Below, in pieces: positions 3,254-64,000 of a stretch of 64,000 nucleotides of DNA. Every line of letters starts with the position of its first letter. Position 1 is the stretch's first letter. A model generated the notes under the pieces. That model saw only the letters and a program-made list of their open reading frames with translations. It searched no databases and had not been told where the DNA came from. The DNA is from Macrostomum lignano. Taxonomy: Eukaryota. The stretch spans positions 63,980-127,979 of the forward strand of contig NIVC01002976.1 of NCBI GenBank assembly GCA_002269645.1, written 5' to 3'. A program made the translations under genes and the position numbers.

Positions 3254-3430
3254 GCAATCGACGTCTGGATGTCCACCTGTCTCGTGTTTGTTTTCGGAGC
3301 CTTGATCGAGTACGCCATCGCCAACGTCCTGTCCAGGCAGCAGAGCGCTCTGGAGCACTGGGAGGAGCTGAGAGCCATTCTGGATAGTCAGCGGAATGCC
3401 GCTAGAAATGGCGAGGTTGCTGTTGATCAG
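3254..3430 (+). CDS. Cys-loop ligand-gated anion channel subunit (GluCl/GlyR/GABA-A-like), TM3 exon
   Basis: Acceptor ttattttttttcag|; translates AIDVWMSTCLVFVFGALIEYAIANV, a typical anion-channel M3 motif. First donor CAG|GTGGGT at 3431 is phase 0. Upstream exons were not found in the window. Confidence 0.9.
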
Positions 3431-4153
3431 GTGGGTGAGGTTGTTGTTGATCAGGTGGGTAGGGTTGTTGTTGATCAGGTGGGTGAGGTTGTTGTTGATC
3501 AGGTAGGTAGGGTTGTTGTTGATCAGGTGGGTGAGGTTGTTGTTGATCAGGTGGGTGAGTTTGTTGTTGATCAGGTGGGTGAGGTTGCTGTTGATCAGGT
3601 GGGTGAGGTTGTTGTTGATCAGGTGGGTGGGGTTGTTGTTGATCAGGTGGGTGAGTTTGTTGTTGATCAGGTGGGTGGGGTTGTTGTTGATCAGGTGAGT
3701 GAGTTTGTTGTTGATCAGGTGGGTGAGTTTGTTGTTGATCAGGTGGGTGAGTTTGTTGTTGATCAGGTGGGTGAGTTTGTTGTTGATCAGGTGGGTGGGG
3801 TTGTTGTTGATCAGGTGGGTGAGGTTGTTGTTGATCAGGTGGGTGAGTTTGTTGTTGATCAGGTGGGTGAGTTTGTTGTTGATCAGGTGGGTGGGGTTGT
3901 TGTTGATCAGGTGGGTGAGTTTGTTGTTGATCAGGTGGGTGGGGTTGTTGTTGATCAGGTGGGTGAGTTTGTTGTTGATCAGGTGGGTGAGTTTGTTGTT
4001 GATCAGGTGGGTGGGGTTGTTGTTGATCAGGTGGGTGAGGTTGTTGTTGATCAGGTGGGTGAGTTTGTTGTTGATCAGGTGGGTGGGGTTGTTGTTGATC
4101 AGGTGGGTGAGGTTGTTGTTGATCAGGTGGGTGAGGTTGTTGTTGATCAGGTG
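3414..4153 (+). repeat. 24-bp minisatellite GTGGGTGAGGTTGTTGTTGATCAG, about 31 units
   Basis: CAG|GT junctions every 24 nt from 3430 to 4150; translates as (VGEVVVDQ)n. Confidence 0.95.
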
Positions 4154-4175
4154 AGGGAAGTTGATTGTTAACCAG

Positions 4176-4733
4176 GGCCTATTAAGAGCGCACAGAATCC
4201 TCGCACCGGTTCAACAACCTCCCCAGCAGTCCTCCGCCCTCAAGGAGTCGATCCCATTGACCTACATCAATCGCCGAGCCACGGCCACCAAAGCGTCAGC
4301 AGCAGCAGCAGCAGCCGGTCCATCATCCGGTTTTTATTCGTTGGCATCGAAGGCTGAGATGTCGGAGAGCGCGGAGGACAGCAGCTGCAGCTACGGCTAC
4401 ATCAGGCAGCGTCTGGCGCAGGCCGAAGCCCGCAGCTGCAACCGGCAGCGCCAGCAGCAGCAGCAGCTGCGCAAAAAACTCGAGCCCGGCCGAGAGCCCC
4501 TGTGGAGCCAATCGAGTCAAAGCGAAGTTCGGATTGGCGCAGACTCGAGCGGCAACTGGGACGAAGCTGACGGCAACGCCGACAATGCCGACAATGATGA
4601 CAATGACGAAGACGCCGAAGAGGTGATCAGCAGCGCAGAGATGATCGACCGAATCTCCAGGGCGGCGTTCCCAATTTCGTTTGCCATGTTCAACTTGGGC
4701 TACTGGGTTTATTATATTTACATAGCGGAGTAG
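4176..4733 (+). CDS. Cys-loop channel terminal exon: M3-M4 loop and TM4
   Basis: Acceptor ttgttaaccag| is phase 0. Poly-A, poly-Q and acidic loop, then IDRISRAAFPISFAMFNLGYWVYYI (M4 motif) and stop; AATAAA at 4844. Confidence 0.9.
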   Translation, partial: GLLRAHRILAPVQQPPQQSSALKESIPLTYINRRATATKASAAAAAAGPSSGFYSLASKAEMSESAEDSSCSYGYIRQRLAQAEARSCNRQRQQQQQLRKKLEPGREPLWSQSSQSEVRIGADSSGNWDEADGNADNADNDDNDEDAEEVISSAEMIDRISRAAFPISFAMFNLGYWVYYIYIAE

Positions 4734-7269: not shown

Positions 7270-10200
7270 ATGGCATCAAGCAATGATGCCGGCAGCACTG
7301 ACCAACAAGGTGACGATGTACCATTGCTGCGACATCCGCACATAGTTGTTAGCCAGAACACTGTTGATGCTGGCAGTGAGGATGCTGCAGAAAGTGCTGA
7401 TGCCACACCAGAGTCGGCAGTCTTCGAGGAACCGTCGTCGCCATCAGCACCAAAACGATGGCGCTACGTGGAGAAGGAGATCCTTGAGACCGAACAAAGC
7501 TATCTTGCCGATATGTCCAAACTTGCAGAGTCCTTCCTGATGCAGCCACTGGGCAAGGAGTTTCCCACAGAAAAGGTTTGTGAAGATCTACTGAAAATTG
7601 TCATTTAAAATCGCTTCAGTAGTGGTGATTTATCTCAGGATTGCACGGCTCAGACAAAAGTTACAATCGCTTCATTAATATCATGGGGTGATTTTTCCTC
7701 AACGTTCTATTAGAGTCTCACCTAAATCATCTGAGAGTTGACCAAAAACTATCTAAAAGATGACCCCTAGACTATCCAGGAGCCCCCCCCCCCCTAGACT
7801 ATCCAAGAGAACCCCCTAGCCTATCCATGAGAATCGCCCCTAGACTATCCAGGAGCCCCCCCCCCCTAGACTATCCAAGAGAACCCCCTAGCCTATCCAT
7901 GAGAATCGGTCCTAGACTATACATGAGAATCGACCCTACTCTATCCATGAAAATCGCCCCTAGACTAGTCATGAGAATCGCCCCTAGATTATCTATGAGA
8001 ATCGGCTCTGCCGCTCTATACTATCCATTAGAATCGCCCTAGCCTTTCAATGAGAAACGCCCCTAGACTATCCATGAGAATCGCCCCTAGACTACCCATG
8101 AGAATCGCCCCTAGACTACCCGTGAGAATCGCCCCTAGACTACCCATGAGAATCGCCCCTAGACTATCCATTAGAATCGCCCCTAGACTATCCATGAGAA
8201 TCGCCCCTAGACTACCCATGAGAATCGCCCCTAGACTACCCATGAGAATCGCCCCTAGACTATCCATGAGAATCAAAAATACCTTCAACAACCCCTGCAA
8301 AGGTGCTGCTAAACCTGAACGAAGTATGCGAAGCGTCCCGCTCTCTGCTCGCCGACTTAGAAGCGGTTGCCAATGACAACACCGACGCATCAGGCAGCAG
8401 GGACATTGGCCAGGTGTTCATCAAACACGGTGACAGAATCGCCACCGCCTACGTGCCGTTCTGCCGCGGCGTGAAGTCCGCGATCAAGAGGGCGGAGTCG
8501 CTGCAATCTCAAAGCTCGCCGCTGGCTGACAAGATCGCCGAACGGATGAACTCCTTGGCGCCCGACTCTGGGTTTCAATTGGACTCGTTCCTCATCAAAC
8601 CGCTGCAACGGATCACTCGCTACCCCCTGCTGCTCAGGGAGCTGCTCAAACAGGGCTGCCCTTATCCTCAATCTGTCAGTCAGGCTAGCGAGATCATCAC
8701 CAACACGCTTAGAAGGGTCAATGAGGAAGTTCGAGTGCACGAATTGCTGAGTCGGTTAGTTCTGAATATGCCTCTGGTGGGAATCATGTCTCAGTCACTG
8801 ATGAGAATCATGCCTCAGTCACTGATGAGAATCATGCCTCAGTCACGTCACTGATGAGAATCATGCCTCAGTCACACATGAGAATCATGCCTCAGTCACT
8901 GATGAGAATCATGCCTCAGTCACTGATGAGAATCATGCCTCAGTCACGTCACTGATGAGAATCATGCCTCAGTCACACATGAGAATCATGCCTCAGTCAC
9001 TGATGAGAATCATGTCTCAGTCACTGATGAGAATCATGCCTCAGTCACTGATGAGAATCATGCCTCAGTCACTGATGAGAATCATGCCTCAGTCACTGAT
9101 GAGAATCATGCCTCAGTCACACATGAGAATCATGCCTCAGTCACACATGAGAATCATGCTTCAGTCACACATGAGAATCATGCCTCAGTCACACATGAGA
9201 ATCATGCCTCAGTCACAGATGAATCATGCCTCAGTCAGACATGAGAATCATGCCTCAGTCACTGATGAGAATCATGCCTCAGTCACACATGAGAATCATG
9301 CCTCAGTCACAGATGAGAATCATGCCTCAGTCACTGATGAGAATCATGCCTCAGTCACTGATGAGAATCATGCCTCAGTCACACATGAGAATCATGCCTC
9401 AGTCACACATGAGAATCATGCCTCAGTCACACATGAGAATCATGCCTCAGTCACACATGAGAATCATGCTTCAGTCACACATGAGAATCATGCCTCAGTC
9501 ACACATGAGAATCATGCCTCAGTCACAGCTGAGAATCATGCGTCAGTCACTGATGAGAATCATGCGTCAGTCACAGATGAGAATCATGCGTCAGTCAATG
9601 ATGAGAATCATGCGTCAGTCACAGATGAGAATCATGCCTCAGTCACAGATGAGAATCATGCCTCAGTCACAGATGAGAATCTTGCCTCAGTCACACATGA
9701 GAATTATGTCTCAGTCACATATAGGAATCATGTCTCAGTCAATGATGAGAATCATGCCTCAATCACAGATGAGAATCATGCCTCAATCACACATGAGAAT
9801 CATGCCTCAGTCACACATGAAAATCATGCCTCAGTCACACATGAGAATCATGCCTCAGTCACACATGAGAATCATGCCTCAGTCACACATGAGAATCATG
9901 CCTCAGTCACACATGAGAATCATGCCTCAGTCACACATGAGAATCATGCCTCAGTCACACATGAGAATCATGCCTCAGTCACTGATGAGAATCATGCCTC
10001 AGTCACGTCACTGATGAGAATCATGCCTCAGTCACACATGAGAATCATGCCTCAGTCACTGATGAGAATCATGCCTCAGTCACTGATGAGAATCATGCCT
10101 CAGTCACTGATGAGAATCATGCCTCAGTCACGTCACTGATGAGAATCATGCCTCAGTCACACATGAGAATCATGCCTCAGTCACTGATGAGAATCATGCC

Positions 10201-13200
10201 TCAGTCACTGATGAGAATCATGCCTCAGTCACTGATGAGAATCATGCCTCAGTCACGTCACTGATGAGAATCATGCCTCAGTCACACATGAGAATCATGC
10301 CTCAGTCACTGATGAGAATCATGTCTCAGTCACTGATGAGAATCATGCCTCAGTCACTGATGAGAATCATGCCTCAGTCACTGATGAGAATCATGCCTCA
10401 GTCACTGATGAGAATCATGCCTCAGTCACACATGAGAATCATGTCTCAGTCACACATGAGAATCATGCCTCAGTCACACATGAGAATCATGCCTCAGTCA
10501 GACATGAGAATCATGCCTCAGTCACAGATGAATCATGCCTCAGTCACAGATGAATCATGCCTCAGTCACAGATGAATCATGCCTCAGTCACAGATGAGAA
10601 TCATGCCTCAGTCACATATGAGAATCATGCCTCACCCGCGGTTGCAGCTACCTGACCCCGGCTGACTGGCAGCAGCAGCAGCCGCAGCGAGCCCGCTGGG
10701 ACAGCCTCGTCCACACTCTGGACAAGAAAGGCGGCCGCTGGGGCACCTTCGTTCAGGAGCGCCTGTCCGGCCATGTTTCGGCCACTGCGGATCCAAAGCT
10801 GCGTCATCAGGTTGGCCGGTTCATCGCCTGCCGCCAGCTAGTCGACACGGTGCTTCAGCAGTGCGGCCGACTTGGCCGCAAGACCCAGCGCTGCGTTCAG
10901 TCTCTGGCCGCCCTGCACCGCCAGTTGGCCAACTTCTCTCCGGCCGTGGCCGCTGAAGCTCCGTGGCCGGAGGCCGCTCTCTTGGACGAAGGTGCCGACG
11001 GTCGATGGGGCCGATTCACTTCAGACGCTGAGAAGCTGGTGTTCGAGCCGTTGCGGAGTCTGCAGGACTGCTTCTCTGGTGAGCTGGGAGTGGCTGGGGG
11101 AGCTGAGGCCATGTGCAAGGACCTTTGAATGCATGGACTGGAAGAGCAGTGCTGGCGGATCCTTGAAAAGTGTCTTTGAACTCCTGAGGATTGAGTAGAT
11201 CTCCTGAACTACCTGAGGATTGAGTAGATCTCCTGAACTACCTGAGGATTGAGTAGATCTCCTGAACTACCTGAGGATTGAGTAGATCTCCTGAACTACC
11301 TGAGGATTTAGTAGACGTCTGAACTACCTGAGGATTGAGTAGATCTCCTGAACTACCTGAGGATTGAGTAGATCTCCTGAACTACCTGAGGATTTAGTAG
11401 ATGTCCTGAACTACCTGAGGATTTAGTAGATGTCCTGAACTACCTGAGGATTTAGTAGATGCCCTGAACTACCTGAGGATTGAGTAGATCTCCTAAACTA
11501 CCTGAGGATTTAGTAGATGTCCTGAACTACCTGAGGATTTAGTAGATGTCCTGAACTACCTGAGGATTTAGTAGATGTCTGAACTAACTGAGGATTTAGT
11601 AGATGTCCTGAACTACCTGAGGATTTAGTAGATGTCTGAACTAACTGAGGATTGAGTAGATGTCCTGAACTAACTGAGGATTGAGTAGATGTCCTGAACT
11701 AACTGAGGATTTAGTAGATGTCTGAACTAACTGAGGATTTAGTAGATGTCTGAACTACCTGAGGATTTAGTAGATGTCTGAACTAACTGAGGATTTAGTA
11801 GATGTCCTGAACTACCTGAGGATTTAGTAGATGTCCTGAACTACCTGAGGATTGAGTAGATGTCCTGAACTAACTGAGGATTTAGTAGATGTCTGAACTA
11901 CCTGAGGATTTAGTAGATGTTTTGTAACCCGGGTCGGCTTGGGTGCCCAGTCCCGAGTACAATATATATTATATGTGATATAACAGGCGTTGTGACGCTC
12001 TGTCTGTACTTTTATGAATACGACGAGCAGGCGTGGCGACGCTCTGCGATAATAATTCGATCCCTCTGGTGTTGTGACACTCAGAGTTCACGCTGCGGCT
12101 CGAGGTGTGGTGACACTCTCGAGTGCTTCTATTCTCTATACCGTAGGGCGTACGCAATATATATGGTAAACGGTACCGTACTACAGAAGCTATATGGTCT
12201 CCCGGCGTTATGACGCTCTGGCAAGAATTCGGCCTAGCAAGCTTCCCGGAAAGAAAGGACTCAAACAGCAGGCGGCTTACCAGTGGCCAGATGACTGTTC
12301 ACCGTTTATTATTCGCAGGTCTCAAGCGCAGTTTCCGACTTCTTCTTAATTCTCCAAGACTCTTCTCAATTAGGCTATTGTGTTTCTTTTATCGAAGTAG
12401 CTAATGTTGCTGTTTCTTTTATCAGGTCTCGCGCTTGCACTCTCTGAGCACACCAAAACACAAAAAGCACGCAGGTGGTGGGCAAGAGCCAGAGTCGCAC
12501 CATAAATAGCACCCAAACCCTGGGGCAGACGGCCCCACCGGCTAAGCTCACCAAAACAAACCACGCCGGCCCAGCCAATCAAAACCCCGCCTAAGGGGGG
12601 AGGGGCTGCACCCGCGCCAAAGCTGGCCCGGCCGCAGCCAACCAGCCCTGAGCACGGGGCAGGGGCACGGCTGGGGAGGGGCACGCGCAAAGCCCGGCCG
12701 GGGCCAGACCCTGCCACGCCCGCCAACCCCCCCAACCAGCCCCAAAGTGCAACGCGCCCTGCCAACTGACAAGGGCGCATGCACTACAGATGTCTGAACT
12801 ACCTGAGGATTTAGTAGATGTCTGAACTACCTGAGGATTTAGTAGATGCCCTGAACTACCTGAGGATTTAGTAGATGTCCTGAACTACCTGAGGATTGAG
12901 TAGATCTCCTGAACTACCTGAGGATTTAGTAGATGCCCTGAACTACCTGAGGATTTAGTAGATGTCTGAACTAACTGAGGATTTAGTAGATGTCCTGAAC
13001 TACCTGAGAATTGAGTAGATGTCCTGAACTAACTGAGGATTTAGTAGATGTCTGAACTACCTGAGGATTTAGTAGATGTCTGAACTACCTGAGGATTTAG
13101 TAGATGTCTGAACTACCTGAGGATTGAGTAGATCTCCTAAACTACCTGAGGATTTAGTAGATGTCCTGAACTACCTGAGGATTGAGTAGATCTCCTGAAC

Positions 13201-16200
13201 TACCTGAGGATTTAGTAGATGCCCTGAACTACCTGAGGATTTAGTAGATGTCTGAACTACCTGAGGATTTAGTAGATGTCCTGAACTACCTGAGGATTTA
13301 GTAGATGTCCTGAACTACCTGAGGATTTCCCGTCTAAGGCACTGATGGTTGTTAAAGCTATTCACCTATATTTTTAAAAACTAAATTCATTCAATAAATT
13401 TACGCGTAGTTAGAAACTAGAAAACTAGAAATTCAAGCCTATGAAATTAAAGTCTTGAAAGCTTAGCAAGGTTGCCAGGTACGAGATTGTTTACCTTGGC
13501 AAGTGCATCAACCCCCTCTCAATGCAACAGTTTTAACTAATGAATTCCATTTGCACACGGAATAGAAATTCTGAAAAGCGAAGTTAGTCAGTACTTTATA
13601 ATACTGAATCCAGTTAGTTAAGCAAGGTAAATTATGAATGGGAATCTGCCTTTTTTCTCTTGCAACTTTATTAACTTTACAAGTTCATCAATTCCGCGTG
13701 GCAGAGATTTGCAATGTGCTTTGTAAATTTAGAAACTAAAAAACACAATTTGGAAACTTATAAAATTCCTTAGCTGTGTCTGGGGCTGAAACATTCAGGG
13801 AAAGAACGAATGCTGTGACAGACTGAAACAGACAGTACGAGATTCCATGGAAGACACTATAAGACACTGAGACAAACACTGAGGCAGACACTGAGACAGA
13901 CACTGAGACAGACATAAGACAGACACTGAGACAGACACTAAGACGGACACTGAGACAGGCACTGAGACAGGCACTGAGACAGACACTGAGACAGGCACTG
14001 AGACAGACACTGAGACAGGCACTCAGACAGAAACTGAGACAGGCACTGAGACAGACACTGAGACAGACACTGAGACAGGCACTGAGACAGACATTGAGAC
14101 AGACACTGAGACAGACACTGAGGACAGACACTGAGACAGACACTGAGACAGACACTGAGACAGACACTGAGACAGACACTGAGACAGACACTGAGACAGG
14201 CACTGAGACAGACACTGAGACAGGCACTCAGACAGAAACTGAGACAGGCACTGAGACAGACACTGAGACAGACACTGAGACAGGCACTGAGACAGACATT
14301 GAGACAGACACTGAGACAGACACTGAGGACAGACACTGAGACAGACACTGAGACAGACACTGAGACAGACACTGAGACAGGCACTGAGACAGACACTGAG
14401 ACAGGCACTGAGACAGAAACTGTGACAGACACTGAGACAGGCACTGAGACAGACACTGAGACAGACGCTGAGACAGGCACTGAGACAGACACTAAGACAG
14501 ACACTGAGACAGACACTGAGACAGGCACTGAGACAGGCACTGAGACAGACACTGAGACAGACGCTGAGACAGGCACTGAGACAGGCACTGAGACAGGCAC
14601 TGAGACAGACACTGAGACAGGCACTGAGACAGAAACTGAGACAGACACTGAGACAGACACTGAGACAGACACTGAGACAGGCACTGAGACAGGCACTGTG
14701 ACAGGCACTGAGACAGACAGGCACTGAGACAGGCACTGAGACAGACACTCAGACAGAAACTGTGACAGGCACTGAGACAGACACTCAGACAGAAACTGAG
14801 ACAGGCACTGAAACAGACACTGAGACAGGCACTGAGACAGACACTGAGACAGACACTGAGACAGGCACTGAGACAGACTCTGAGACAGACACTGAGACAG
14901 ACACTAAGGACAGACACTGAGACAGGCACTGAAACAGACACAAGACAGGCACTGAGACAGAAACTGAGACAGACACTGAGACAGACACTGAGACAGACAC
15001 TGAGACAGGCACTGAGACAGGCACTGTGACAGGCACTGAGACAGACAGGCACTGAGACAGGCACTGAGACAGACACTCAGACAGAAACTGTGACAGGCAC
15101 TGAGACAGACACTCAGACAGAAACTGAGACAGGCACTGAAACAGACACTGAGACAGGCACTGAGACAGACACTGAGACAGAAACTGAGACAGGCACTGAG
15201 ACAGACTCTGAGACAGACACTGAGACAGACACTAAGGACAGACACTGAGACAGGCACTGAAACAGACACAAGACAGACACTGAGACAGACACTGAGACAG
15301 ACACTGAGACAGACACTGAGACAGGCACTGAGACAGGCACTGAGACAGACACTGAGACAGGCACAAAGAAATACTAAGATAGACCCACCAGTGAACACAG
15401 GGTTCCAAGACAGCAGTAAGCCCCTCATACTTAGCGCAGAGAGATTGGTGCACCAGCCCCCTAAGCAAGGCAAACACGAGCGGGCTGCCTTCAGTGCAGG
15501 CCCGCTTCCTAACGCCAGTTATTTGCGAAGTTCATCAAGCATTCACCGAAATTCTTTCCAACCCCCCGCCCGGCGCAGGCCCGCAGCGCCTGATCGACGC
15601 GTGCGAGCGCAAACGCCTCGACTACGAGCGCGTCCTGCGCCGCTCCCAGCCCGACCCCATGGCCGAGGACGCGGCCAGGCAAGATTTCGCCGCCCTGAGC
15701 GGCCGACTCAAAGAGGAGCTGCCAGATTTGATCAGCTTGTCAATCCAGCTGCTGGTCAGGTCTGTTGTCTGCTTCCTGCGCTTGTTGCAGTCGGCCAGTA
15801 CTCAAGCTCGTCTGCTTCTAAAAGAAGCTTTCCCAAGCGATAGCTGCGAGCTGACGCCCTTAATAGAGCAGGAACTGGACGCCTGGCTGCAGCGCTTGGC
15901 AGCTCTCCCGACTCTTGCCGAGGCCTCCCTACTGCAGGAAGTCGACGAAGAGTCCGCAGCTGACGGCGGCGGTGGCGACGAGGATGCGGCAGATTCGGCA
16001 TCGCCCGCCACTCCGGGATTCCGGCCGGCTTCGGCGATCCGGCAGAGTGATGAGCTGCGGCAGCGGCTGGTCGGCAAGTACAAGATGTCCCAGCTGCGGC
16101 GGGTGGTCCGCGAGCATCTCGGCTGCTCCGCTAAACGAGAAGTGGACGCGTGCCAGGTGAGTGAGACAGGGTGGCTGATGGTGACGATGTCTCAAGTGAC

Positions 16201-31103: not shown

Positions 31104-32659
31104 TAGCAGTTGACAAACTTTTTACCTCAAATGCCAAAGGAGAGGAGAGAAGGAGATAAGGGAGAGGAGACAAGGGAGAGGAGAGAAGGGAGAGGAGACA
31201 AGGGAGAGGAGAGAAGGGAGAGGAGACAAGGGAGAGGAGAGAAGGGAGAGGAGAGAAGGGAGAGGAGAGAAGGGAGAGGAGAGAAGGGAGAGCAGAGAAG
31301 GGAGAGGAGACAAGGGAGAGGAGAGAAGGGAGAGGAGAGAAGGGAGAGGAGAGAAGGGAGAGGAGAGAAGGGAGAGGAGAGAAGGGAGAGGAGAGAAGGG
31401 AGAGGAGAGAAGGGAGAGGAGAGAAGGGAGAGGAGAGAAGGGAGAGGAGAGAAGGGAGAGGAGAGAAGGGAGAGGAGAGAAGGGAGAGGAGAGAAGGGAG
31501 AGCAGATAAGGGAGAGGAGACAAGGGAGAGGAGAGAAGAGAGAGGAGAGAAGGGAGAGGAGAGAAGGGAGAGTAGAGAAGGGAGAGGAGAGAAGGGAGAG
31601 CAGATAAGGGAGAGGAGACAAGGGAGAGGAGAGAAGGGAGAGGAGACAAGGGAGAGGAGAGAAGGGAGAGGAGAGAAGGGAGAGGAGAGAAGGGAGAGGA
31701 GAGAAAGGAGAGGAGAGAAGGGAGAGTAGAGAGGGAGAGGAGAGAAGGGAGAGCAGAGAAGGGAGAGGAAAGAAGGGAGAGGAGACAAGGGAGAGGAGAG
31801 AAGAGAGAGGAGAGAAGGGAGAGGAGAGAAGGGAGAGTAGAGAAGGGAGAGGAGAGAAGGGAGAGCAGATAAGGGAGAGGAGACAAGGGAGAGGAGAGAA
31901 GGGAGAGGAGACAAGGGAGAGGAGAGAAGGGAGAGGAGAGAAGGGAGAGGAGAGAAGGGAGAGGAGAGAAAGGAGAGGAGAGAAGGGAGAGTAGAGAGGG
32001 AGAGGAGAGAAGGGAGAGCAGAGAAGGGAGAGGAAAGAAGGGAGAGGAGAGAAGGGAGAGGAGAGAAGGGAGAGGAGAGAAGGGAGAGGAGACAAGGGAG
32101 AGGAGAGAAGGGAGAGGAGAGAAGGGAGAGGAGAGAAGGGAGAGGAGAGAAGGGAGAGGAGAGAAGGGAGAGGAGAGAAGAGAGAGGAGAGAAGGGAGAG
32201 CAGATAAGGGAGAGGAGACAAGGGAGAGGAGAGAAGAGAGAGGAGAGAAGGGAGAGGAGACAAGGGAGAGGAGACAAGGGAGAGGAGAGAAGGGAGAGTA
32301 GAGAAGGGAGAGGAGAGAAGGGAGAGCAGAGAAGGGAGAGGAAAGAAGGGAGAGTAGAGAAGGGAGAGGAGAGAAGGGAGAGGAGAGAAGGGAGAGGAGA
32401 GAAGGGAGAGGAGAGAAGGGAGAGGAGAGAAGGGAGAGGAGACAAGGGAGAGGAGAGAAGGGAGAGGAGAGAAGGGAGAGCAGAGAAGGGAGAGGAGACA
32501 AGGGAGAGGAGAGAAGGAAGAGGAGAGAAGAGAGAGGAGAGAAGGGAGAGGAGAGAAGAGACACAAACCGTATGCGGGCCGGATTGCTATAGTGAAGTTT
32601 TTAAGGACACCTGAGGGCCGGATGGAAAGGCTTGACAAGCCGGAGTTTGCCAACCCCTG
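31104..32659. mobile_element. hAT-like MITE with expanded 14-bp GGGAGAGGAGAGAA array
   Basis: Ends TAGCAGTTGACAAAC / GTTTGCCAACCCCTG; array spans about 31135-32560. Confidence 0.65.
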
Positions 32660-50034: not shown

Positions 50035-50757
50035 ATGCACAAAAACACAGTGTGCACAAACACACGGTGTGCACAAACACACGGTGTGCACAAACACACG
50101 GTGTGCACAAACACACGGTGTGCACAAACACGCGGTGTGCAAAAACACACGGTGTGCACAAACACACGGTGTGCACAAACACACGGTGTGCACAAACACA
50201 CGGTGTGCACAAACACACAGTATGCACAAACACACGGTATGCACAAACACACAGTATGCACAAACACACAGTATGCACAAACACACGGTGTGCACAAACA
50301 CACGGTGTGCACAAACACACGGTGTGCACAAACACACAGTATGCACAAACACACGGTGTGCACAAACACACGGTGTGCACAAACACACGGTGTGCACAAA
50401 CACACGGTGTGCACAAACACACGGTGTGCACAAACACACGGTGTGCACAAACACACGGTGTGCACAAACACACGGTGTGCACAAACACACGGTATGCACA
50501 AACACACGGTATGCACAAACACACGGTATGCACAAACACACGGTGTGCACAAACACACGGTATGCACAAACACACGGTATGCACAAACACGCGGTGTGCA
50601 CAAACACACGGTGTGCACAAACACACGGTGTGCACAAACACACGGTATGCACAAACACACGGTATGCACAAACACACGGTATGCACAAACACACGGTGTG
50701 CACAAACACACGGTATGCACAAACACACGGTATGCACAAACACGCGGTGTGCACAAA
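50035..50757. repeat. 17-bp satellite GCACAAACACACGGT(G/A)T, left arm
   Basis: About 42 units ending exactly at the retroelement. Confidence 0.97.
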
Positions 50758-50932
50758 TGGCTAGTTTGCGCGGGCTGCGCTAACTGGCGTTTGTGTACGC
50801 TGCCCACCCCTGCCCCTCCCCGCGGCTTCCCCCCACCCCCGGTGTTGGGGGGGGGGGGTTGCGTGGCGGGGGTTTTATACCCCGCGGTTGGCTCTTTGGC
50901 CTCGCTGTCGCATTGCAATTGAAAAAATTTTT
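50758..50932 (+). repeat. Split direct repeat A1
   Basis: Matches 54886-55060 except one substitution and homopolymer lengths. Confidence 0.93.
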
Positions 50933-50945
50933 ATGCTGCTGAGTC

Positions 50946-51977
50946 ATGTCACACGATTCTCTGACGGTACGAGAACTGCGCATGGCCTTGCGTGCTAAAG
51001 GCTTGCAAACCGTAGGCAACAAGCGCACCCTATTGGAGAGACTTCTGCAGTCTCAAGGCTCAGTGGACACGGGACCCATCGATGAATCGGACACCAGCAA
51101 TCCATCGAGAAGGCGAGGGCCCGACGACGGGACGGCGGCGGTCGGCGGCGGCGAGGCGGCAGGAGGGACCCACGGGACTGGCGACCTGGACCGGGACCTG
51201 CGGGAGGCAGAGAAGCAGCTGCGCTTGCTGACAATTCGTCGGGACCAAGCGCGCCTGGAAGCCGAGATCCGTCAGCTGGACCGCCGTGCCGATGAGCCGC
51301 AGCGGCGACCTGCAAATGCCTCAGTGCCCGGTGAGTACTCAAGCCTTGAGGATTTAGTGCTGGGACCTACTGTCAGAGTGCCGGATGAGGTGCAGCAGGC
51401 GGGGCAGCAGCACCCGAATGCGTACCGGGTGCCGGAGTTCATCAGCGCTCGCAAGCGGCTGGCGCTGAACAAGTCAAGTCAAGCCAGCAAGCAGGCCGCC
51501 CTGGACAGCCTCTCGGTTGGCGACTGGATCACCGGAAACGCCAACGCGCTGATGCAGATGTTGAAGGACGGCAGACTCCTCGTCCTCCGTGATGGCGCTA
51601 TCGACATGTCGGAGCTGCTGGAGTACCTGAAGCACACGGCAAAAATTGGCGACCTCCTTGATCTCGGATTCGACCGCGGCCGCGTTTTGCGCTATGATGA
51701 TGAGTACAGAGCGCAGCACGCTGAGGCCGGCGCCTGGGACAGCTCGGTGACCGACCTGGGTCTGGTGGCGGCACACCTGATGGCTCCGAATCTTCAACTG
51801 CAGGCCGGCTCAGCGGGCAGGTCATCAGCAAAGCGACCGGTCTGCTTCGACTTCAACAAGGTGTCCGGCTGCCAGCGCAACCCGTGTCGTTTCGCACACA
51901 GTTGTAGGCGCTGCGGCCAGGCGCACTCGGAGGCCTCCTTCCACAGAGCGGAGGGCGGCCAGGCGGCAAAAAACTGA
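50946..51977 (+). CDS. gag: Gag-like protein with N-terminal SAP motif and C-terminal Cys/His finger
   Basis: LTVRELRMALRAKGLQTVGNKRTLLERL (SAP consensus); CFDFNKVSGCQRNPCRFAHSCRRCGQAH. Confidence 0.85.
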   Translation: MSHDSLTVRELRMALRAKGLQTVGNKRTLLERLLQSQGSVDTGPIDESDTSNPSRRRGPDDGTAAVGGGEAAGGTHGTGDLDRDLREAEKQLRLLTIRRDQARLEAEIRQLDRRADEPQRRPANASVPGEYSSLEDLVLGPTVRVPDEVQQAGQQHPNAYRVPEFISARKRLALNKSSQASKQAALDSLSVGDWITGNANALMQMLKDGRLLVLRDGAIDMSELLEYLKHTAKIGDLLDLGFDRGRVLRYDDEYRAQHAEAGAWDSSVTDLGLVAAHLMAPNLQLQAGSAGRSSAKRPVCFDFNKVSGCQRNPCRFAHSCRRCGQAHSEASFHRAEGGQAAKN

Positions 51978-53950
51978 TGGACGGGGTTCAGCGGCAGGGG
52001 TCTCTTAACATCGAGTCGCCCGCCCCTGCCGCTGCTTCTGTCGAACCCCAAAAGGAGGGCGACTCAAGCGGGACCCTCTCCACCGACTTGCGCCTTGAAG
52101 CCTGGCGCCTCGAGCTGGCCGACACGGAGATGCCAACGAAGCTCGCGCAGTTCGTTTTGAGCGGTGTGAAGGACGGTTTCCGCATCAGGAACGTCAGCAG
52201 TCCGGTGGACTCTGTCGAGCAGGAGAACTACGGCTCCATCGGTCAGCATCGAGTCGAGGTTCAGGCCCAAGTCCGCCGGGAACTGCAAGCTGGAAGATAT
52301 CGCGTTAGCGCCAAGCCGACTATTGTGAGCGCGCTGGGCGCCATTCCGAAGTCCGGGGGCGGCATCCGGCTCATCCATGACTGCAGTCAGCCCCAGGGTC
52401 GGGCCGTCAATGATTTGTTTGCTTGTCAGCAGAAGCTTCGGTTTTCTTCGGCGGCTGCCTTTGCTAGGAAGCTGCGCCAGGACATGTACATGTGTAAAGT
52501 TGACCTAAGCCAGGCCTACCGGTCTTGCGGCATTCACCCGGACGACCACTGCCTCACCGGTCTGAAGTTCACGTTCGAGGGCGAGGCGGAGCCGACCTAC
52601 ATGGTGGACACCCGGCTGCCGTTCGGAGCGGCAGCATCCGTGAGCAGCTTTTTCCAGATCAGCAACGCCATTCGGTTTATGATGCTCAAGCGCAGGTTCT
52701 TCAACTTCGAGGTCTACATGGACGACTTCGGCTTCGCGGGTTCGCTGACTGAGTGCTGGCGCTTTTACAACAAGCTGACGCAGCTGCTGCAGAGCCTGGG
52801 CCTGACTGTCAACTGGAAGAAGTGCGTGCAGCCGACGCAGGAGATGTGCTTCCTGGGCATTCAGTTCAACACGCAGTCGGGGCTGATGAGTCTGCCAGAG
52901 ACGAAGGTCGAGGAGCTGCAGGCCTGCCTTGACCTCTGCTGCACAAAGCGGCGGATCTCCAAGCACGAGTTGCAGAAGCTAGTGGGCAGGCTCAACTGGG
53001 CCTGTCAGGTGGTCTGCAACGGCCGGCCGTTTCTGCGAGACCTGATCGACCGCGTCAACGACTTGTCGAGCCCGAAGGATCGGCTGTTGGTGGATGGCCA
53101 GTTCAAGAGCGTCCTGAGCTGGTGGAAAGTTGCTCTGCGGCAGCAGCCAGGTCGCGAGCTCTGGCCTGCTGCCAGGAGGCCGGTTGCCATGGAGACGGAC
53201 GCCTGTCTGGTGGGGGCAGCGGCTGTTCTGAGAGATCCGGCTGGTTCTGACTGGTGCTATCTGCAGTGGGAAGTCGACGCTGGGAGCGAGTTCAGCGATT
53301 GCTGCATCAACTACAAGGAGGCTGCCGCGGTGCTGCTGGCGTTGCTGCACTGGCGCCGTCAACTGCACAACTGCCGGATCGCTGTCTACTGCGACAATGC
53401 TGCAGCCTGCGCGATTATCAACAAGGGGTCATCCAGGGAGCCCCGGCTGTTGCGGCTGCTGCAGACTGTTGCTCTGCTGTGCCTAAAGCAGAACATTGTG
53501 GTCACCGCCCACCATGTGCCCGGCCGGTTTCAGCTGTTTGCCGACGCCGCCTCCCGCCTGCATTGCCGGCAGGAGTTGCTGAATTTTCTGTTGCGAGCCT
53601 ATGCAACCGCCTCTGTTTGCCCGCATGAATTTGCGGGACATGCGCTTAGCCCTGCCTCCGCCGCCTTTCTTTTTTTACAGGTCGCCTCCCTGGGTCTCTC
53701 GACGCTGCCGCCGCCAAACTGCTCCAGCAGGCCTATGCATCATCGTCCAAGAGGTCGCTGTCATCTGCTGTCCGCACCTGGCAACGCTTCTGCCGAGAGC
53801 GGCGGCTCGACCCACTCGGCTGTCGGGCGGAGGATCTCGCAAACTACGTCGGCCAGCTCGTGGACGGCCGGCTCAGCTCCTTCGGCAGCGTCCGCGTGCA
53901 TATCAGCGCTCTGTCCGCCAGTTTCCGACTGGCGGGAGTGCCGGACCTGA
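51977..53950 (+). CDS. pol: Reverse transcriptase-RNase H
   Basis: RT motifs RLIHD, KVDLSQAYR, LPFG, YMDD; RNase H TDAC, KEA, CDN, ADAASR. The start overlaps the gag stop (TGATG). Confidence 0.93.
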   Translation: MDGVQRQGSLNIESPAPAAASVEPQKEGDSSGTLSTDLRLEAWRLELADTEMPTKLAQFVLSGVKDGFRIRNVSSPVDSVEQENYGSIGQHRVEVQAQVRRELQAGRYRVSAKPTIVSALGAIPKSGGGIRLIHDCSQPQGRAVNDLFACQQKLRFSSAAAFARKLRQDMYMCKVDLSQAYRSCGIHPDDHCLTGLKFTFEGEAEPTYMVDTRLPFGAAASVSSFFQISNAIRFMMLKRRFFNFEVYMDDFGFAGSLTECWRFYNKLTQLLQSLGLTVNWKKCVQPTQEMCFLGIQFNTQSGLMSLPETKVEELQACLDLCCTKRRISKHELQKLVGRLNWACQVVCNGRPFLRDLIDRVNDLSSPKDRLLVDGQFKSVLSWWKVALRQQPGRELWPAARRPVAMETDACLVGAAAVLRDPAGSDWCYLQWEVDAGSEFSDCCINYKEAAAVLLALLHWRRQLHNCRIAVYCDNAAACAIINKGSSREPRLLRLLQTVALLCLKQNIVVTAHHVPGRFQLFADAASRLHCRQELLNFLLRAYATASVCPHEFAGHALSPASAAFLFLQVASLGLSTLPPPNCSSRPMHHRPRGRCHLLSAPGNASAESGGSTHSAVGRRISQTTSASSWTAGSAPSAASACISALCPPVSDWRECRT

Positions 53951-54657
53951 CCAGGCACCCGCTGCTGCACCTGGTTCTGCGGGGAGCCAAGCGCGAGCTG
54001 GGGTCGGAGCCGAGTCGCAAGCTGCCGGTGTCGCCAGACCTTTTGTCGAGACTGCGGCTGCAAGTCGACAGCTCGAATCCTGTGCAGGCGGCCTGCTGGG
54101 CTGCGGTCATGTGCGCTTGGTGGGGGATGTTCAGGAAGTCCAGCCTGCTGCCGCGAGGGCGCGCCGATCCGCCAGTGCTGCGACTGAGCTCGCTGGCAAG
54201 ATGCCCCGAAGGCCTGCTTCTGACGTCCAGCTTCGGGAAGACCAACCAGTACGGCCGGACGCATCGCGTGCTGCTGCCAGAGTTGACTTCGGGCCACCCG
54301 CTCTGTCCAGTGGCGGCACTGCGAGGCCACCTGCGCTGCAACCGGCTGAAGCGGCGGCAGCAGGGCCTGTTTTCATTCAGCAGTGGATCGTCCGGTCACG
54401 CATCTCTGACGTCCCGGAGGCTCGATGTACAGTTCAGGTCGTGGCTCGGCAAGGCGGGAGTTCCGGCGGCCGGGTTTTCTGTGCATAGCCTGCGGCGAGG
54501 CGCCGCCACCTGGGCGGCCCGGTGCGGCCTGTCAGTGCGGGAGATCCAGTGCGTGGGTGACTGGCGCAGCGATGCAGTGAGCGTCTACCTGTCCCGCGAT
54601 GACACGGCTCTGCGTGCGGCGCGCAAGCTTGCTGTTGCGGCGCTTGACCAAACCTGA
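53683..54657 (+). CDS. Tyrosine recombinase; frame open from 53650, no suitable ATG, probably expressed by splicing
   Basis: N-terminal AYASSSKRSLSSAVRTWQRFC; catalytic residues in FRKSS, KTNQ, HSLRR, GDWRS and VYL. Confidence 0.9.
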   Translation, partial: RLPGSLDAAAAKLLQQAYASSSKRSLSSAVRTWQRFCRERRLDPLGCRAEDLANYVGQLVDGRLSSFGSVRVHISALSASFRLAGVPDLTRHPLLHLVLRGAKRELGSEPSRKLPVSPDLLSRLRLQVDSSNPVQAACWAAVMCAWWGMFRKSSLLPRGRADPPVLRLSSLARCPEGLLLTSSFGKTNQYGRTHRVLLPELTSGHPLCPVAALRGHLRCNRLKRRQQGLFSFSSGSSGHASLTSRRLDVQFRSWLGKAGVPAAGFSVHSLRRGAATWAARCGLSVREIQCVGDWRSDAVSVYLSRDDTALRAARKLAVAALDQT

Positions 54658-54780
54658 CGTGTTTCGCGGTTTTTTTTTGAAGAAAGGTTTTGGGCTCCTT
54701 TTTTGTTTGCTTGTCCGCTTTTGCTTGCCTCTGCTTGGTCTGCTTTTGCTCTAGTCTGTTTTCTTGCTGCTTTTGGTGTT

Positions 54781-54883
54781 GGGGGGAGTGCATGGCAGCC
54801 TTCCCTGACCTCCTCGCTGTTCCTGCGCCATTTGCTGCTCTTGAGCTTGCTGCGTTCGTCTTCTGGGGTGGGCAGTGGGCACT
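54781..54883 (+). repeat. Split direct repeat B1, abutting A2
   Basis: Identical to 55157-55259. Confidence 0.93.
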
Positions 54884-54885
54884 AA

Positions 54886-55060
54886 TGGCTAGTTTGCGCG
54901 GGATGCGCTAACTGGCGTTTGTGTACGCTGCCCACCCCTGCCCCTCCCCCGCGGCTTCCCCCACCCCCGGTGTTGGGGGGGGGGTTGCGTGGCGGGGGGT
55001 TTTATACCCCGCGGTTGGCTCTTTGGCCTCGCTGTCGCATTGCAATTGAAAAAAATTTTT
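54886..55060 (+). repeat. Split direct repeat A2
   Basis: Copy of A1; the B1-AA-A2 junction reads GGGCACTAATGGCTAG. Confidence 0.93.
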
Positions 55061-55156
55061 TTTCGTATCCTGTCACTCTTTTAATCCTGCTTTGATCCGT
55101 TCTAACTGTTGTCAATAATGCTTGAATATTTTCTCGTAATCGGTCTGAAATATACG

Positions 55157-55259
55157 GGGGGGAGTGCATGGCAGCCTTCCCTGACCTCCTCGCTGTTCCT
55201 GCGCCATTTGCTGCTCTTGAGCTTGCTGCGTTCGTCTTCTGGGGTGGGCAGTGGGCACT
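55157..55259 (+). repeat. Split direct repeat B2 (element 3' end)
   Basis: Identical to B1; followed by AA and the satellite. Confidence 0.93.
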
Positions 55260-58200
55260 AACAAACGGTATGCACAAACACACGGTATGCACAAACACAC
55301 GGTGTGCTCAAACACACGGTATGCACAAACAAACGGTGTGCACAAACACACGGTATGCACAAACACACGGTGTGCACAAACACACGGTGTGCACAAACAC
55401 ATGGTGTGCACAAACACACGGTGTGCACAAACACACGGTATGCACAAACACACGGTGTGCACAAACACACGGTGTGCACAAACACACGGTATGCACAAAC
55501 ACACGGTGTGCACAAACACGCGGTGTGCACAAACACACGGTATGCACAAACACACGGTGTGCTCAAACACACGGTGTGCTCAAACACACGGTTTGCACAA
55601 ACACACGGTATGCACAAACACACGGTGTGCTCAAATACACGGTGTGCACAAACACACGGTATGCACAAACACACGGTGTGCTCAAACACACGGTGTGCAC
55701 AAACACACGGTGTGCACAAACACGCGGTGTGCACAAACACACGGTATGCACAAACACACGGTGTGCTCAAACACACGGTATGCACAAACACACGGTATGC
55801 ACAAACACACGGTGTGCACAAACACATGGTGTGCACAAACACACGGTGTGCACAAACACACGGTATGCACAAACACACGGTGTGCACAAACACACGGTGT
55901 GCACAAACACACGGTATGCACAAACACACGGTGTGCACAAACACGCGGTGTGCACAAACACACGGTATGCACAAACACACGGTGTGCTCAAACACACGGT
56001 GTGCTCAAACACACGGTTTGCACAAACACACGGTATGCACAAACACACGGTGTGCTCAAATACACGGTGTGCACAAACACACGGTGTGCACAAACACGCG
56101 GTATGCACAAACACACGGTGTGCACAAACACACGGTATGCACAAACACACGGTGTGCACAAACACACGGTGTGCACAAACAAACGGTATGCACAAACACA
56201 TGGTGTGCACAAACACACGGTGTGCACAAACACGCGGTGTGCACAAACACACGGTGTGCACAAACAAACGGTATGCACAAACACACGGTGTGTACAAACA
56301 CACGGTATGCACAAACACACGGTGTGCACAAACACACGGTGTGCACAAACACACGGTATGCACGAACACACGGTGTGCTCAAACACACGGTTTGCACAAA
56401 CACACGGTGTGCACAAACACACGGTGTGCACAAACACACGGTATGCACAAACACACGGTGTGCACAAACACACGGTGTGCACAAACACGCGGTGTGCACA
56501 AACACACGGTGTGCACAAACAAACGGTATGCACAAACACACGGTGTGTACAAACACACGGTATGCACAAACACACGGTGTGCACAAACACACGGTGTGTA
56601 CAAACACACGGTGTGCACAAACACACGGTGTGCACAAACACACGGTGTGCACAAACACGCGGTGTGCACAAACACACGGTGTGCACAAACACACGGTGTG
56701 CACAAACACACGGTGTGCACAAACAAACGGTATGCACAAACACATGGTGTGTACAAACACACAGTGTGCACAAAAACACGGTGTGCACAAACACACGGTG
56801 TGCACAAACACACGGTATGCACGAACACACGGTGTGCTCAAACACACGGTTTGCACAAACACACGGTATGCACAAACACACGGTGTGCTCAAACACACGG
56901 TGTGCACAAACACACGGTGTGCACAAACACGCGGTATGCACAAACACGCGGTGTGCACAAACACACGGTATGCACAAACACACGGTGTGCACAAACACAC
57001 GGTGTGCACAAACACACGGTATGGACAAACACATGGTGTGCACAAACACACGGTGTGCACAAACACGCGGTGTGCACAAACACATGGTGTGCACAAACAC
57101 ACGGTGTGCTCAAACACACGGTGTGCTCAAACACACGGTGTGCACAAACACGCGGTGTGCACAAACACACGGTGTGCACAAACAAACGGTATGCACAAAC
57201 ACACGGTGTGTACAAACACACGGTATGCACAAACACACGGTGTGCACAAACACACGGTGTGCACAAACACACGGTATGCACGAACACACGGTGTGCTCAA
57301 ACACACGGTTTGCACAAACACACGGTGTGCACAAACACACGGTGTGCACAAACACACGGTATGCACAAACACACGGTGTGCACAAACACACGGTGTGCAC
57401 AAACACGCGGTGTGCACAAACACACGGTGTGCACAAACAAACGGTATGCACAAACACACGGTGTGTACAAACACACGGTATGCACAAACACACGGTGTGC
57501 ACAAACACACGGTGTGTACAAACACACGGTGTGCACAAACACACGGTGTGCACAAACACACGGTGTGCACAAACACGCGGTGTGCACAAACACACGGTGT
57601 GCACAAACACACGGTGTGCACAAACACACGGTGTGCACAAACAAACGGTATGCACAAACACATGGTGTGTACAAACACACGTGTGCACAAAAACACGGTG
57701 TGCACAAACACACGGTGTGCACAAACACACGGTATGCACAACACACGGTGTGCTCAAACACACGGTTTGCACAAACACACGGTATGCACAAACACACGGT
57801 GTGCTCAAACACACGGTGTGCACAAACACACGGTGTGCACAAACACGCGGTATGCACAAACACGCGGTGTGCACAAACACACGGTATGCACAAACACACG
57901 GTGTGCACAAACACACGGTGTGCACAAACACACGGTATGGACAAACACATGGTGTGCACAAACACACGGTGTGCACAAACACGCGGTGTGCACAAACACA
58001 TGGTGTGCACAAACACACGGTGTGCACAAACACGCGGTGTGCACAAACACACGGTGTGCACAAACAAACGGTATGCAAAAACACACGGTGTGTACAAACG
58101 CACGGTATGCACAAACACACGGTATGCACAAACAAACGGTATGCACAAACACACGGTATGCACAAACACACGGTATGCACAAACACACGGTATGCACAAA

Positions 58201-61200: not shown

Positions 61201-64000
61201 ACAAACACACGGTTTGCACAAACACACGGTGTGCACAAACACACGGTATGCACAAACACACGGTATGCACAAACACACGGTGTGCACAAACACACGGTGT
61301 GCACAAACACACGGTGTGCACAAACACACGGTGTGCACAAACAAACGGTATGCACAAACACACGGTGTGTACAAACACACGGTATGCACAAACAAACGGT
61401 ATGCACAAACACACGGTATGCACAAACACACGGTATGCACAAACACACGGTATGCACAAACACACGGTGTGCACAAACACACGGTATGCACAAACACACG
61501 GTATGCACAAACAAACGGTGTGCACAAACACACGGTGTGCTCAAACACACGGTGTGCACAAACACACGGTGTGCACAAACACACGGTGTGCACAAACACA
61601 CGGTGTGCACAAACACACGGTGTGCACAAACACACGGTGTGCACAAACACGCGGTATGCACAAACACGCGGTGTGCACAAACACACGGTATGCACAAACA
61701 CACGGTATGCACAAACAAACGGTGTGCACAAACACACGGTGTGCACAAACACACGGTGTGCACAAACACACGGTGTGCACAAACACACGGTGTGCACAAA
61801 CACACGGTGTGCACAAACACGCGGTATGCACAAACACGCGGTGTGCACAAACACACGGTATGCACAAACACACGGTATGCACAAACACACGGTATGCACA
61901 AAAACACGGTATGCTCAAACACACGGTGTGCACAAACACACGGTGTGCACAAACACGCGGTGTGCACAAACACACGGTATGCACAAACACACGGTGTGCT
62001 CAAACACACGGTATGCACAAACACACGGTATGCACAAACACACGGTGTGCACAAACACATGGTGTGCACAAACACACAGTGTGCACAAACACACGGTATG
62101 CACAAACACACGGTGTGCACAAACACACGGTGTGCACAAACACACGGTATGCACAAACACACGGTGTGCACAAACACGCGGTGTGCACAAACACACGGTA
62201 TGCACAAACACACGGTGTGCTCAAACACACGGTGTGCTCAAACACACGGTTGCACAAACACACGGTATGCACAAACACACGGTGTGCTCAAACACACGGT
62301 GTGCACAAACACACGGTGTGCACAAACACGCGGTATGCACAAACACACGGTGTGCACAAACACACGGTGTGCACAAACACACGGTATGCACAAACACACG
62401 GTATGCACAAACACACGGTGTGCACAAACACACGGTGTGCACAAACACACGGTATGCACAAACACACGGTGTGCACAAACACACGGTGTGCACAAACACA
62501 CGGTGTGCACAAACACACGGTGTGCACAAACACGCGGTATGCACAAACACGGTGTGCACAAACACACGGTATGCACAAACACACGTGTGCACAAACAACA
62601 CGGTGTGCACAAACACACGGTAAGGACAAACACATGGTGTGCACAAACACACGGTGTGCACAAACACACGTGTGCACAAACACACGGTATGACAAACACA
62701 TGGTGCACAAACACAGCGGTGTGCACAAACACACGGTGTGCACAAACACACGGTGTGCACAAACACACGGTGTGCACAAACACGGTGCACAAACACACGG
62801 TATGCACAAACACACGGTGTGCACAAACGCACGGTATGCACAAACACACGGTATGCACAAACACACGGTATGCAAAACACACGGTATGCACAAACACACG
62901 GTATGCACAAACACACGGTGTGCACAAACACACGGTGTGCACAAACACACGCACGGTTGCACAAACACACGGTGTGCACAAACACGGTGTGCACAAACAC
63001 ACGGTGTGCACAAACACACGGTGCACAAACACACGGCACAAACACACGGTGTGCACAAACACACGGTATGCACAAACACACGGTGTGCACAAACACACGG
63101 TGTGCACAAACACACGGTATGCACAAACACACGGTGTGCACAACACACGGTATGCACAAACACACGTGTGCACAAACACACGGTGTGCACAAACACACGG
63201 TGTGCACAAACACACGGTGTGCACAAACACACGGTATGCACAAACACACGGTATGCACAAACACACGGTGTGCACAAACACACGGTGTGCACAAACACAC
63301 GGTGCACAAACACGCGGTGTGCACAAACACACGGTGTGCACAAACACGGTATGCACAAACACACGGTGTGCACAACACACGGTGTGCACAAACACACGGT
63401 GTGCACAAACACACGGTGTGCACAAACACACGGTATGCACAAACACACGGTGTGCACAAACACACGTGTGCACAAACACACCGGTGTGCACAAACACACG
63501 TTGCACAAACACGGTGTGCACAAACACACGGTATGCACAAACACACGGTTGCACAAACACACGGTGTGCACAAAACACGGTGCACAAACACACGGTGTGT
63601 CAAACACACGGTGTGCACAAAACACGGTGTGCACAAACACACGGTGTGCACAAACACACGGTGTGCACAAACACACGGTGTGCACAAACACGGTGTGCAC
63701 AAACACACGGTGTGCACAAAACACGGTATGCACAAACACACGGTGTGCACAAACACACGGTGTGCACAAACACGGTGTGCACAAACACACGTGTGCACAA
63801 ACACACGGTATGCACAAACACACGGTGTGCCAAACACACGGTGTGCACAAAACACACGGTGCACAAACAAACGGTTGCCAAACACACGGTGCACAAACAC
63901 CGTGTGCACAAACACACGGTATGCACAAACACACGTGTGCACAAACACACGGTATGCACAAACACACGGTGTGCACAAACACACGGTATGCACAAACACA
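55260..64000. repeat. 17-bp satellite, right arm (over 8.7 kb, runs off the window)
   Basis: About 510 units with recurrent variants; stop-free frames explain the giant HTVC/CTNT ORFs. Confidence 0.98.

Follow-up and report, generated by a model that had tools for sequence, protein, structure and literature searches.

A Ngaro-type retrotransposon in a 17-bp satellite of Macrostomum lignano, at a site resembling the element's own terminal arm

We analysed a 64,000-nucleotide (nt) stretch of Macrostomum lignano DNA (assembly GCA_002269645.1, contig NIVC01002976.1, forward-strand positions 63,980 to 127,979; hereafter the window) and found a 4,504-bp tyrosine-recombinase (YR) retrotransposon at 50758-55261 on the + strand, inserted within an array of a 17-bp satellite and placed by its layout and domains as a new member of the Ngaro type. 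The satellite at the insertion point resembles one end of the element, which hints, from this one copy, at sequence-guided integration. Our best reading, which we hold to be probable while well short of certain, is that the element chose this satellite unit by its sequence. The recombinase, or a complex containing it, would recognise the B-side arm of a palindrome formed where the element's ends are joined, so that the satellite unit would be a favoured, sequence-directed target, and strand exchange would occur directly past that arm, beside a common AA, without homology in the next 7 nt. The recombinase would be made from a spliced message as a fusion to the N-terminus of a SAP-domain gag protein, and this fusion could add DNA or chromatin targeting to the enzyme.

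The insertion site within the satellite

The element meets the satellite at a left junction, ...GTGCACAAA|TGGCTAG (50757|50758), and a right junction, ...GGGCACTAA|CAAACGG (55261|55262), and carries an internal junction, ...GGGCACTAA|TGGCTAG, where its repeats B1 and A2 abut (54885|54886). Joining the two element ends reproduces this internal B1|A2 sequence, as an earlier note on this DNA (the original prediction) had proposed, and the three junction strings quoted there are exact. When the two flanks are joined they read GGTGTGCACAAA+CAAAC, which is one satellite unit of exactly 17 nt. Units with CAAAC number 24 of the approximately 470 in our unit census; for the 16-mer that spans the empty site (GTGCACAAACAAACGG) we counted 19 occurrences in the window, and 217 for the consensus form. 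Rejoining the flanks revealed neither a target-site duplication nor a lost base, and the flush identity at the crossover is AA only (2 nt). The empty-site count thus bears out the earlier proposal that the target was an ordinary satellite variant that acquired no duplication, and with it the claim of a conservative insertion into a pre-existing unit. The consensus unit, GTGTG-CACAAA-CACAC, and the agreement of its CACAAA with the junction's CACTAA at five of six positions had also been given correctly.

We then compared the joined B|A sequence with the empty site in register and found 15 matches in 26 positions, comprising 10 of 13 on the B side and 5 of 13 on the A side. When all 34 phase and orientation registers of the consensus satellite were scored, the register actually used was the best (runner-up, 12 matches). 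Such scores are rare elsewhere in the window, with at least 15/26 reached at 33 of 100,043 non-satellite positions (3.3e-4) and at least 10/13 on the B side at 8 of them (8e-5). The original prediction that the target mimics the circle junction therefore holds as a resemblance above chance, with the qualification that it is the B side that carries it.

A palindrome at the joined ends and the competing explanations

The nearest relatives of the element show 69% identity in reverse transcriptase (RT) and 72% in YR, both in short Logan contigs. Logan contig L026 (4,177 bp), from this nearest family, closes on itself, its last 30 nt being its first 30 nt, and the closure gives the family's joined B|A sequence, ...GGGTGCGCACTAA|TGCTCAGTTTGTGCGCCAAGCACTAACTAGTGTTTGTGCGCACCC (core ...GTGCGCACTAA|TGCTCAGTTTGTGCGCC...). 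In this 4.1-kb element the GCACWAA 7-mer occurs four times, and the four copies are confined to 46 nt at the junction, where they alternate between strands. The window element has an imperfect palindrome over B1|A2 (54871..54932, + strand; delineated by DNA folding, alignment and comparison of pairs with L026) whose four arms are arranged as GCACTAA, 7 nt (TGGCTAG), TTTGCGC, the loop GGGAT, GCGCTAA, 6 nt (CTGGCG) and TTTGTGTAC. The crossover falls within the left arm of the whole palindrome, at the left edge of the 7-nt segment, which reads TGGCTAG in the window element and TGCTCAG in L026. The arms on either side of this segment (GCACTAA-7 nt-TTTGCGC) are complementary at 5 of 7 positions in the window element and 8 of 9 in L026, and the larger palindrome contains a second such pair.

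As single strands, the junctions fold at -20.5 kcal/mol (z -6.2) in the window element and -23.0 kcal/mol (z -5.0) in L026, and no other non-coding stretch is as well conserved in the alignment of the two as the junction block. The folds have 22 column-matched pairs in common, with 95.5% of cells paired as compared to 11-50% when the partners were slid, and two pairs show compensatory changes. This comparison of two sequences suggests that the palindrome is conserved. By these sequence criteria the conserved dyad is a palindrome of about 60 nt built from GCACWAA-type arms and centred elsewhere than the GTGTG/CACAC dyad of the original prediction, and the conserved B-side arm is more likely than that dyad to be the recognised feature.

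The same arrangement recurs in four more distant relatives (L021, L022, L023 and L025; approximately 40% RT identity), all of which have split repeats and lie in unique DNA. In each of them B ends in 6-10 nt that pair with a segment located 30-40 nt inside A; the outer stem so formed encloses an inner hairpin and has the junction at its inner end (z -2.6 to -4.3). Because the B end is complementary to a stretch of A, the joined ends lie in a long imperfect palindrome in every case (6/6 elements, including the window element and L026). We found no description of a junction palindrome in split-repeat elements in the open papers searched.

The satellite supplies what the left junction needs to rebuild this structure. 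Three mismatches separate GGTGTGCACAAA from the B end AGTGGGCACTAA, all of them at sites that the palindrome leaves unpaired or mispaired; at the paired sites the satellite sequence agrees with the B-side arm throughout, so the left junction (attL) restores the palindrome (50744..50803, + strand, comprising satellite GCGGTGTGCACAAA and the first ~46 nt of A1). In DNA folding, attL forms a hairpin of the B1|A2 type with an unbroken 16-bp outer stem (-21.0 kcal/mol, z -3.1), and the hairpin does not form in the fold of the right junction, attR. On this evidence the satellite's GTGCACAAA is a stand-in for the B-side arm, apparently a working copy at the left junction.

Several observations weigh against sequence-directed choice. 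The A-side match is weak, and the 7 nt past the crossover match the target at one position. Classical tyrosine-recombinase sites of the lox and att type need identical overlaps; no such identity was found here, whether past the crossover (1/7) or in the 6-nt spacer of the original prediction (5/6), and in this the site is unlike the classical ones. The four distant relatives share 0, 0, 1 and 0 nt with their targets at the crossover and show chance-level flank similarity of 1-4 of 13 positions per side (counted by hand for L021). There is a single insertion in approximately 560 units of supposedly ideal target. Landing in a satellite is unsurprising in itself, since the 17-bp array makes up 14.8% of the window and tandem arrays together 36%, and elements inside satellites are not unusual here, since a second, unrelated insertion of about 861 bp, with a 6-bp duplication, splits a 29-bp satellite of the same window. 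In addition, the palindrome might serve reverse transcription instead of recombination, and the splice that would join the gag N-terminus to YR is predicted from sequence.

The array content, the second insertion, the relatives without flank mimicry and the single occupied unit are all points in favour of an insertion that was untargeted or weakly targeted, into arrays that are plentiful and in which insertions are harmless and persist, with the B-end resemblance a coincidence. We consider this the most serious alternative, albeit an unlikely one. A coincidence would have to account for the use of the best of 34 registers, for a B-side score reached at so few control positions, for three B-side mismatches that all fall where attL can tolerate them and retain its structure, and for a matched arm motif that is conserved in the nearest family.

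A different account of the mechanism, which we regard as doubtful, is that the junction palindrome is a folded single-strand recombination site, with single-stranded or hairpin-extruded cDNA integrating via the SAP-YR fusion at the satellite arm. The hairpin would present one duplex arm-spacer-arm site, which the fusion would pair with an arm-bearing satellite unit, and one strand exchange at the arm edge would then be completed by replication. This would account for the missing overlap homology, for the one-sided mimicry and for the report that DIRS-1 cDNA is single-stranded (PMC7192593).

Slightly less probable again is the geometry of the original prediction, in which GTGTG/CACAC arms are bound and a 6-bp overlap is exchanged (target, CACAAA; circle, CACTAA). 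The satellite does have the dyad, with a spacer matching at 5/6, and the standard two-step strand-exchange scheme would lead one to expect, in one daughter of a heteroduplex overlap, the CACAAA seen at attL and the CACTAA seen at attR. However, the dyad belongs to the satellite only: the right arm at the element's junction is TGGCT, which matches CACAC at 0/5 positions and is not the inverse of the left arm GTGGG. We therefore rejected these arms as a recombinase site, the element having no right arm; the dyad conserved across families is centred elsewhere, and a mismatch in the overlap normally blocks such enzymes.

Least probable of all is common descent, in which the 17-bp unit would derive from a Ngaro-type junction arm and the insertion would be self-targeting or homology-assisted, as for DIRS-1 into DIRS-1: the unit and L026's distal arm region agree at 14/16 positions (GGTGCGCACAAACAC versus GGTGTGCACAAACAC), and the unit is complementary to the window element's distal arm over the 16-bp stem, but 14/16 was attained in 2 of 60 scan-wide shuffles, a marginal match on which we rejected derivation of the satellite from the element, the window element's own best match (12/16) is a typical null maximum, and the arms are spaced at 26 nt in the element versus a satellite period of 17.

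Architecture, coding content and setting of the element

The element has split direct repeats in the order A1-[gag, RT/RNaseH, YR]-B1A2-B2. Repeat A1 forms the left end (50758..~50937, first letters TGGCTAGTTTGCGCGGG), B1 (54781..54885, last letters ...GGGCAGTGGGCACTAA) directly abuts A2 (54886..~55066), and B2 forms the right end (55157..55261), all on the + strand. B1 and B2 are identical (105/105), and between A1 and A2 there is one substitution, along with six differences in homopolymer length. Because B1 equals B2 and a single substitution separates A1 from A2, the copy appears young; the element is structurally intact and its insertion probably recent. Its split repeats, the gag-RT/RNase H-YR order, and the absence of a methyltransferase and of a target-site duplication are those of Ngaro. 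We found no methyltransferase, the domain whose absence sets Ngaro apart from DIRS1-like and PAT-like elements, and, at E <= 0.01, no further Pfam family in open reading frame (ORF) 2; about 50 residues lie between the end of the RNase H domain and the opening of the YR frame. A search of 50700-55320 for inverted repeats of at least 25 nt found none; the terminal repeats are direct, so the element does not have the arrangement of DIRS1-like elements. An Rfam scan of the window returned zero matches.

ORF1 (50946..51977, + strand, from the ORF list) encodes a gag-like protein of 343 amino acids with a SAP domain (50958-51050, Pfam E 5.7e-07), a middle part resembling a coiled coil, and a CCCH-type Cys/His cluster at its C-terminus; a SAP domain is also present in the nearest family's gag. 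ORF2 (51977..53620, + strand, delimited by Pfam and by frame comparison with L026) encodes RT (52343-52867, RVT_1 6.7e-14) and RNase H (53174-53464, RT_RNaseH 1.4e-05). Its open frame extends to 53950, and the resulting overlap with the YR frame is not conserved in the comparison with L026. The YR coding region (53681..54657, + strand), located by alignment to Cre, Pfam and a frame scan, matches Cre with E 1e-05, with HxxR, W and Y aligned, and contains the R (FRKS), K (GKTN), HSLRRG, GDW and VY motifs; its Pfam Phage_integrase match is sub-threshold (21.4 bits versus a cut-off of 27.1). These matches, with those of RVT_1 and RT_RNaseH, confirm the earlier identification of a YR retrotransposon.

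The frame scan found no in-frame ATG upstream of the conserved YR N-terminal domain, and the frame opens only 12 codons before that domain. A candidate phase-1 intron (51331..53680, + strand; donor CCG|GTGAGTAC, acceptor CTTTCTTTTTTTACAG|G) would join gag residues 1-128, containing SAP and the coiled coil, in frame to YR, and translation of the joined exons yields a 453-amino-acid product. The donor at 51331 matches consensus and the acceptor ending at 53680 is strong, the corresponding places in L026 (620-2981) carry the same donor and acceptor in matching phase, and each of the two elements contains a single GT[AG]AGT upstream of its acceptor. We infer from these sites that a SAP-domain gag N-terminus is spliced onto YR. 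A -1 frameshift was also considered, as a slippery heptamer (T TTT TTA, 53671-53677) lies precisely at the -1 overlap of the ORF2 and YR frames. We prefer splicing because the heptamer is missing from L026 and no structure is found downstream of it (z +0.9), and the frameshift was rejected. A short intron within ORF2 was likewise rejected, as none of the sites checked by hand has a GT in the required phase.

We found one copy of the window element's family in the window. Exact-protein look-ups of gag and ORF2 returned no match on record, genome and viral contig scans with ORF2 returned no relatives, and a metagenome DNA scan with a 17-mer from the start of A returned 19 matches, all of them chance matches of 17-23 nt in bacterial contigs (two, L003 and L012, were inspected). 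The contigs of relatives at 41-55% identity (L028, L029 and L030) end short of a usable junction. In L030 (2700-2840; 41% YR identity) a tandem array of 11-bp units (CACTTGACATT) starts approximately 110 nt past the YR stop and is still running where the contig ends; this array may be flanking satellite or internal repeats. L024 (7342-10960 and 11178-13220) is a split-repeat relative that has an RT ORF but lacks one for YR; its B repeat is unusually long, at ~540 nt, and arrays of 14-nt and 30-nt units begin approximately 200 nt downstream; it may be a non-autonomous derivative beside satellites. Among the four distant relatives, L021 has an array of 164-bp period (11460-12682) 230 nt beyond B2, and L022 lies between two direct repeats of about 600 bp (4083-4701 and 13397-14000, 9.3 kb apart), perhaps nested within some other repeated element.

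The window is animal DNA, with a Cys-loop channel exon (Neur_chan_memb, 4161-4733) and a RhoGEF exon (8303-8854). The 17-bp satellite (unit GGTGTGCACAAACACAC), mapped by Tandem Repeats Finder (TRF) and the unit census, runs from 50036 to 50757 on the left of the element (42.5 units, final letters ...GGTGTGCACAAA) and from 55262, where it begins CAAACGG, to the window end at 64000 on the right (at least 514 units). The 4,504-bp insert has a GC content of about 63%, compared to about 45% in its surroundings. At least 16 different tandem arrays occupy positions 1-50000, with periods of 2, 3, 4, 12, 14, 16, 21, 24, 27, 29 and 41 nt, and several show extreme strand skew, for example ATCT x467 at 823-2687 and AGGAGAGAAGGGAG x102 at 31138-32558. 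Host exon-like ORFs (3269-4733 and 8303-10139) directly adjoin 24-bp arrays (3413-4176 and 8781-10634) that are themselves open for 300-394 codons; these arrays may be coding 8-residue repeats, or arrays that have invaded genes. The 29-bp satellite (11177-11920 and 12788-13328) is split by the ~861-bp insertion at 11921-12781, which has a GC-rich 3' half and AGATGT on both sides, resembling a 6-bp target-site duplication.

Significance and comparison with known systems

Little has been described of how Ngaro and other DIRS-order elements choose targets and enter them: the open papers searched offer only a 3-nt junction model for the DIRS1-like group and, in Cafeteria, a preference for one genomic compartment. 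The locus described here offers a clean filled site with a known empty form, an arm motif and junction palindrome that are conserved across families and are candidate recombinase sites, and a possible SAP-YR fusion that could explain targeting. Should insertion prove phase-specific genome-wide, the element would be a clear case of a retrotransposon homing to a satellite by a site-specific recombinase, and would bear on how satellites and centromere-like arrays accumulate mobile elements. Otherwise it would be an ordinary Ngaro copy in a repeat-rich region.

Ngaro elements, of the DIRS order, have the layout A1-[ORFs]-B1A2-B2, encode gag, RT/RNase H and YR, and have neither a methyltransferase nor target-site duplications (PMC8547959, PMC13465315). 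The window element is like them in its split direct repeats, its gene order and both of these absences. It differs in a gag with SAP, in a YR without its own start that is apparently spliced to the gag N-terminus, in an insertion site that mimics the B-terminal arm, and in having its closest protein relative at just 69-72% identity. Nothing on a SAP-Ngaro or SAP-gag link, or on satellite targeting, was found in the open papers searched. In Cafeteria burkhardae, Ngaros prefer integrated virophages, with ORF1 suspected as the determinant (PMC8547959). Those elements likewise make a marked choice of genomic compartment, but their target is AT-rich viral DNA with no defined motif, whereas here it is a defined satellite unit and the ORF1 N-terminus is possibly fused to YR.

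The model proposed for DIRS1-like elements has them recombine at a short (3-nt) junction sequence shared with the target and leave no duplication (PMC3266345, PMC7192593). In the standard model the element integrates as a circle, a step yet to be demonstrated even for DIRS-1 (PMC7192593). DIRS-1 of Dictyostelium and DIRS1-like elements are, like the window element, YR retrotransposons with an internal copy of their joined ends, and DIRS-1 clusters in repeat-rich centromeres. The window element is without the inverted terminal repeats, internal complementary region and methyltransferase of DIRS1-like elements, whose model invokes 3 common nt where the window element has 2 nt flush and an extended one-sided match.

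Resemblance between an element end and its target is also known from Cryptons, YR DNA transposons whose ends carry a motif almost the same as a short motif of the target (CACCG versus CAYCG, for example) and which integrate by site-specific recombination (PMC9977147). They have no reverse transcriptase and no split repeats, and their target motif spans 4-6 nt, compared to an arm of about 12 nt in the window element. Endogenous nimaviruses show YR-associated insertion into (TAACC)n or 28S rDNA (PMC10871703), which again combines a tyrosine recombinase with tandemly repeated host sequence; these are, however, large DNA viruses with unrelated YR families, and their specificity is drawn from many insertions as compared to one here.

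The junction palindrome is similar to two bacterial recombination sites in the shape of the site and in the absence of overlap homology only. One is the attP site of CTX phage, a folded single-strand site used by XerCD. The other is the integron attC site, an imperfect palindrome that can be folded from one strand and that undergoes a single strand exchange without overlap homology (PMC11641012, PMC3053210). Were the palindrome of the window element indeed a folded single-strand site, its mode of entry would be a eukaryotic equivalent of integration at integron attC or by CTX phage, directed here to a satellite.

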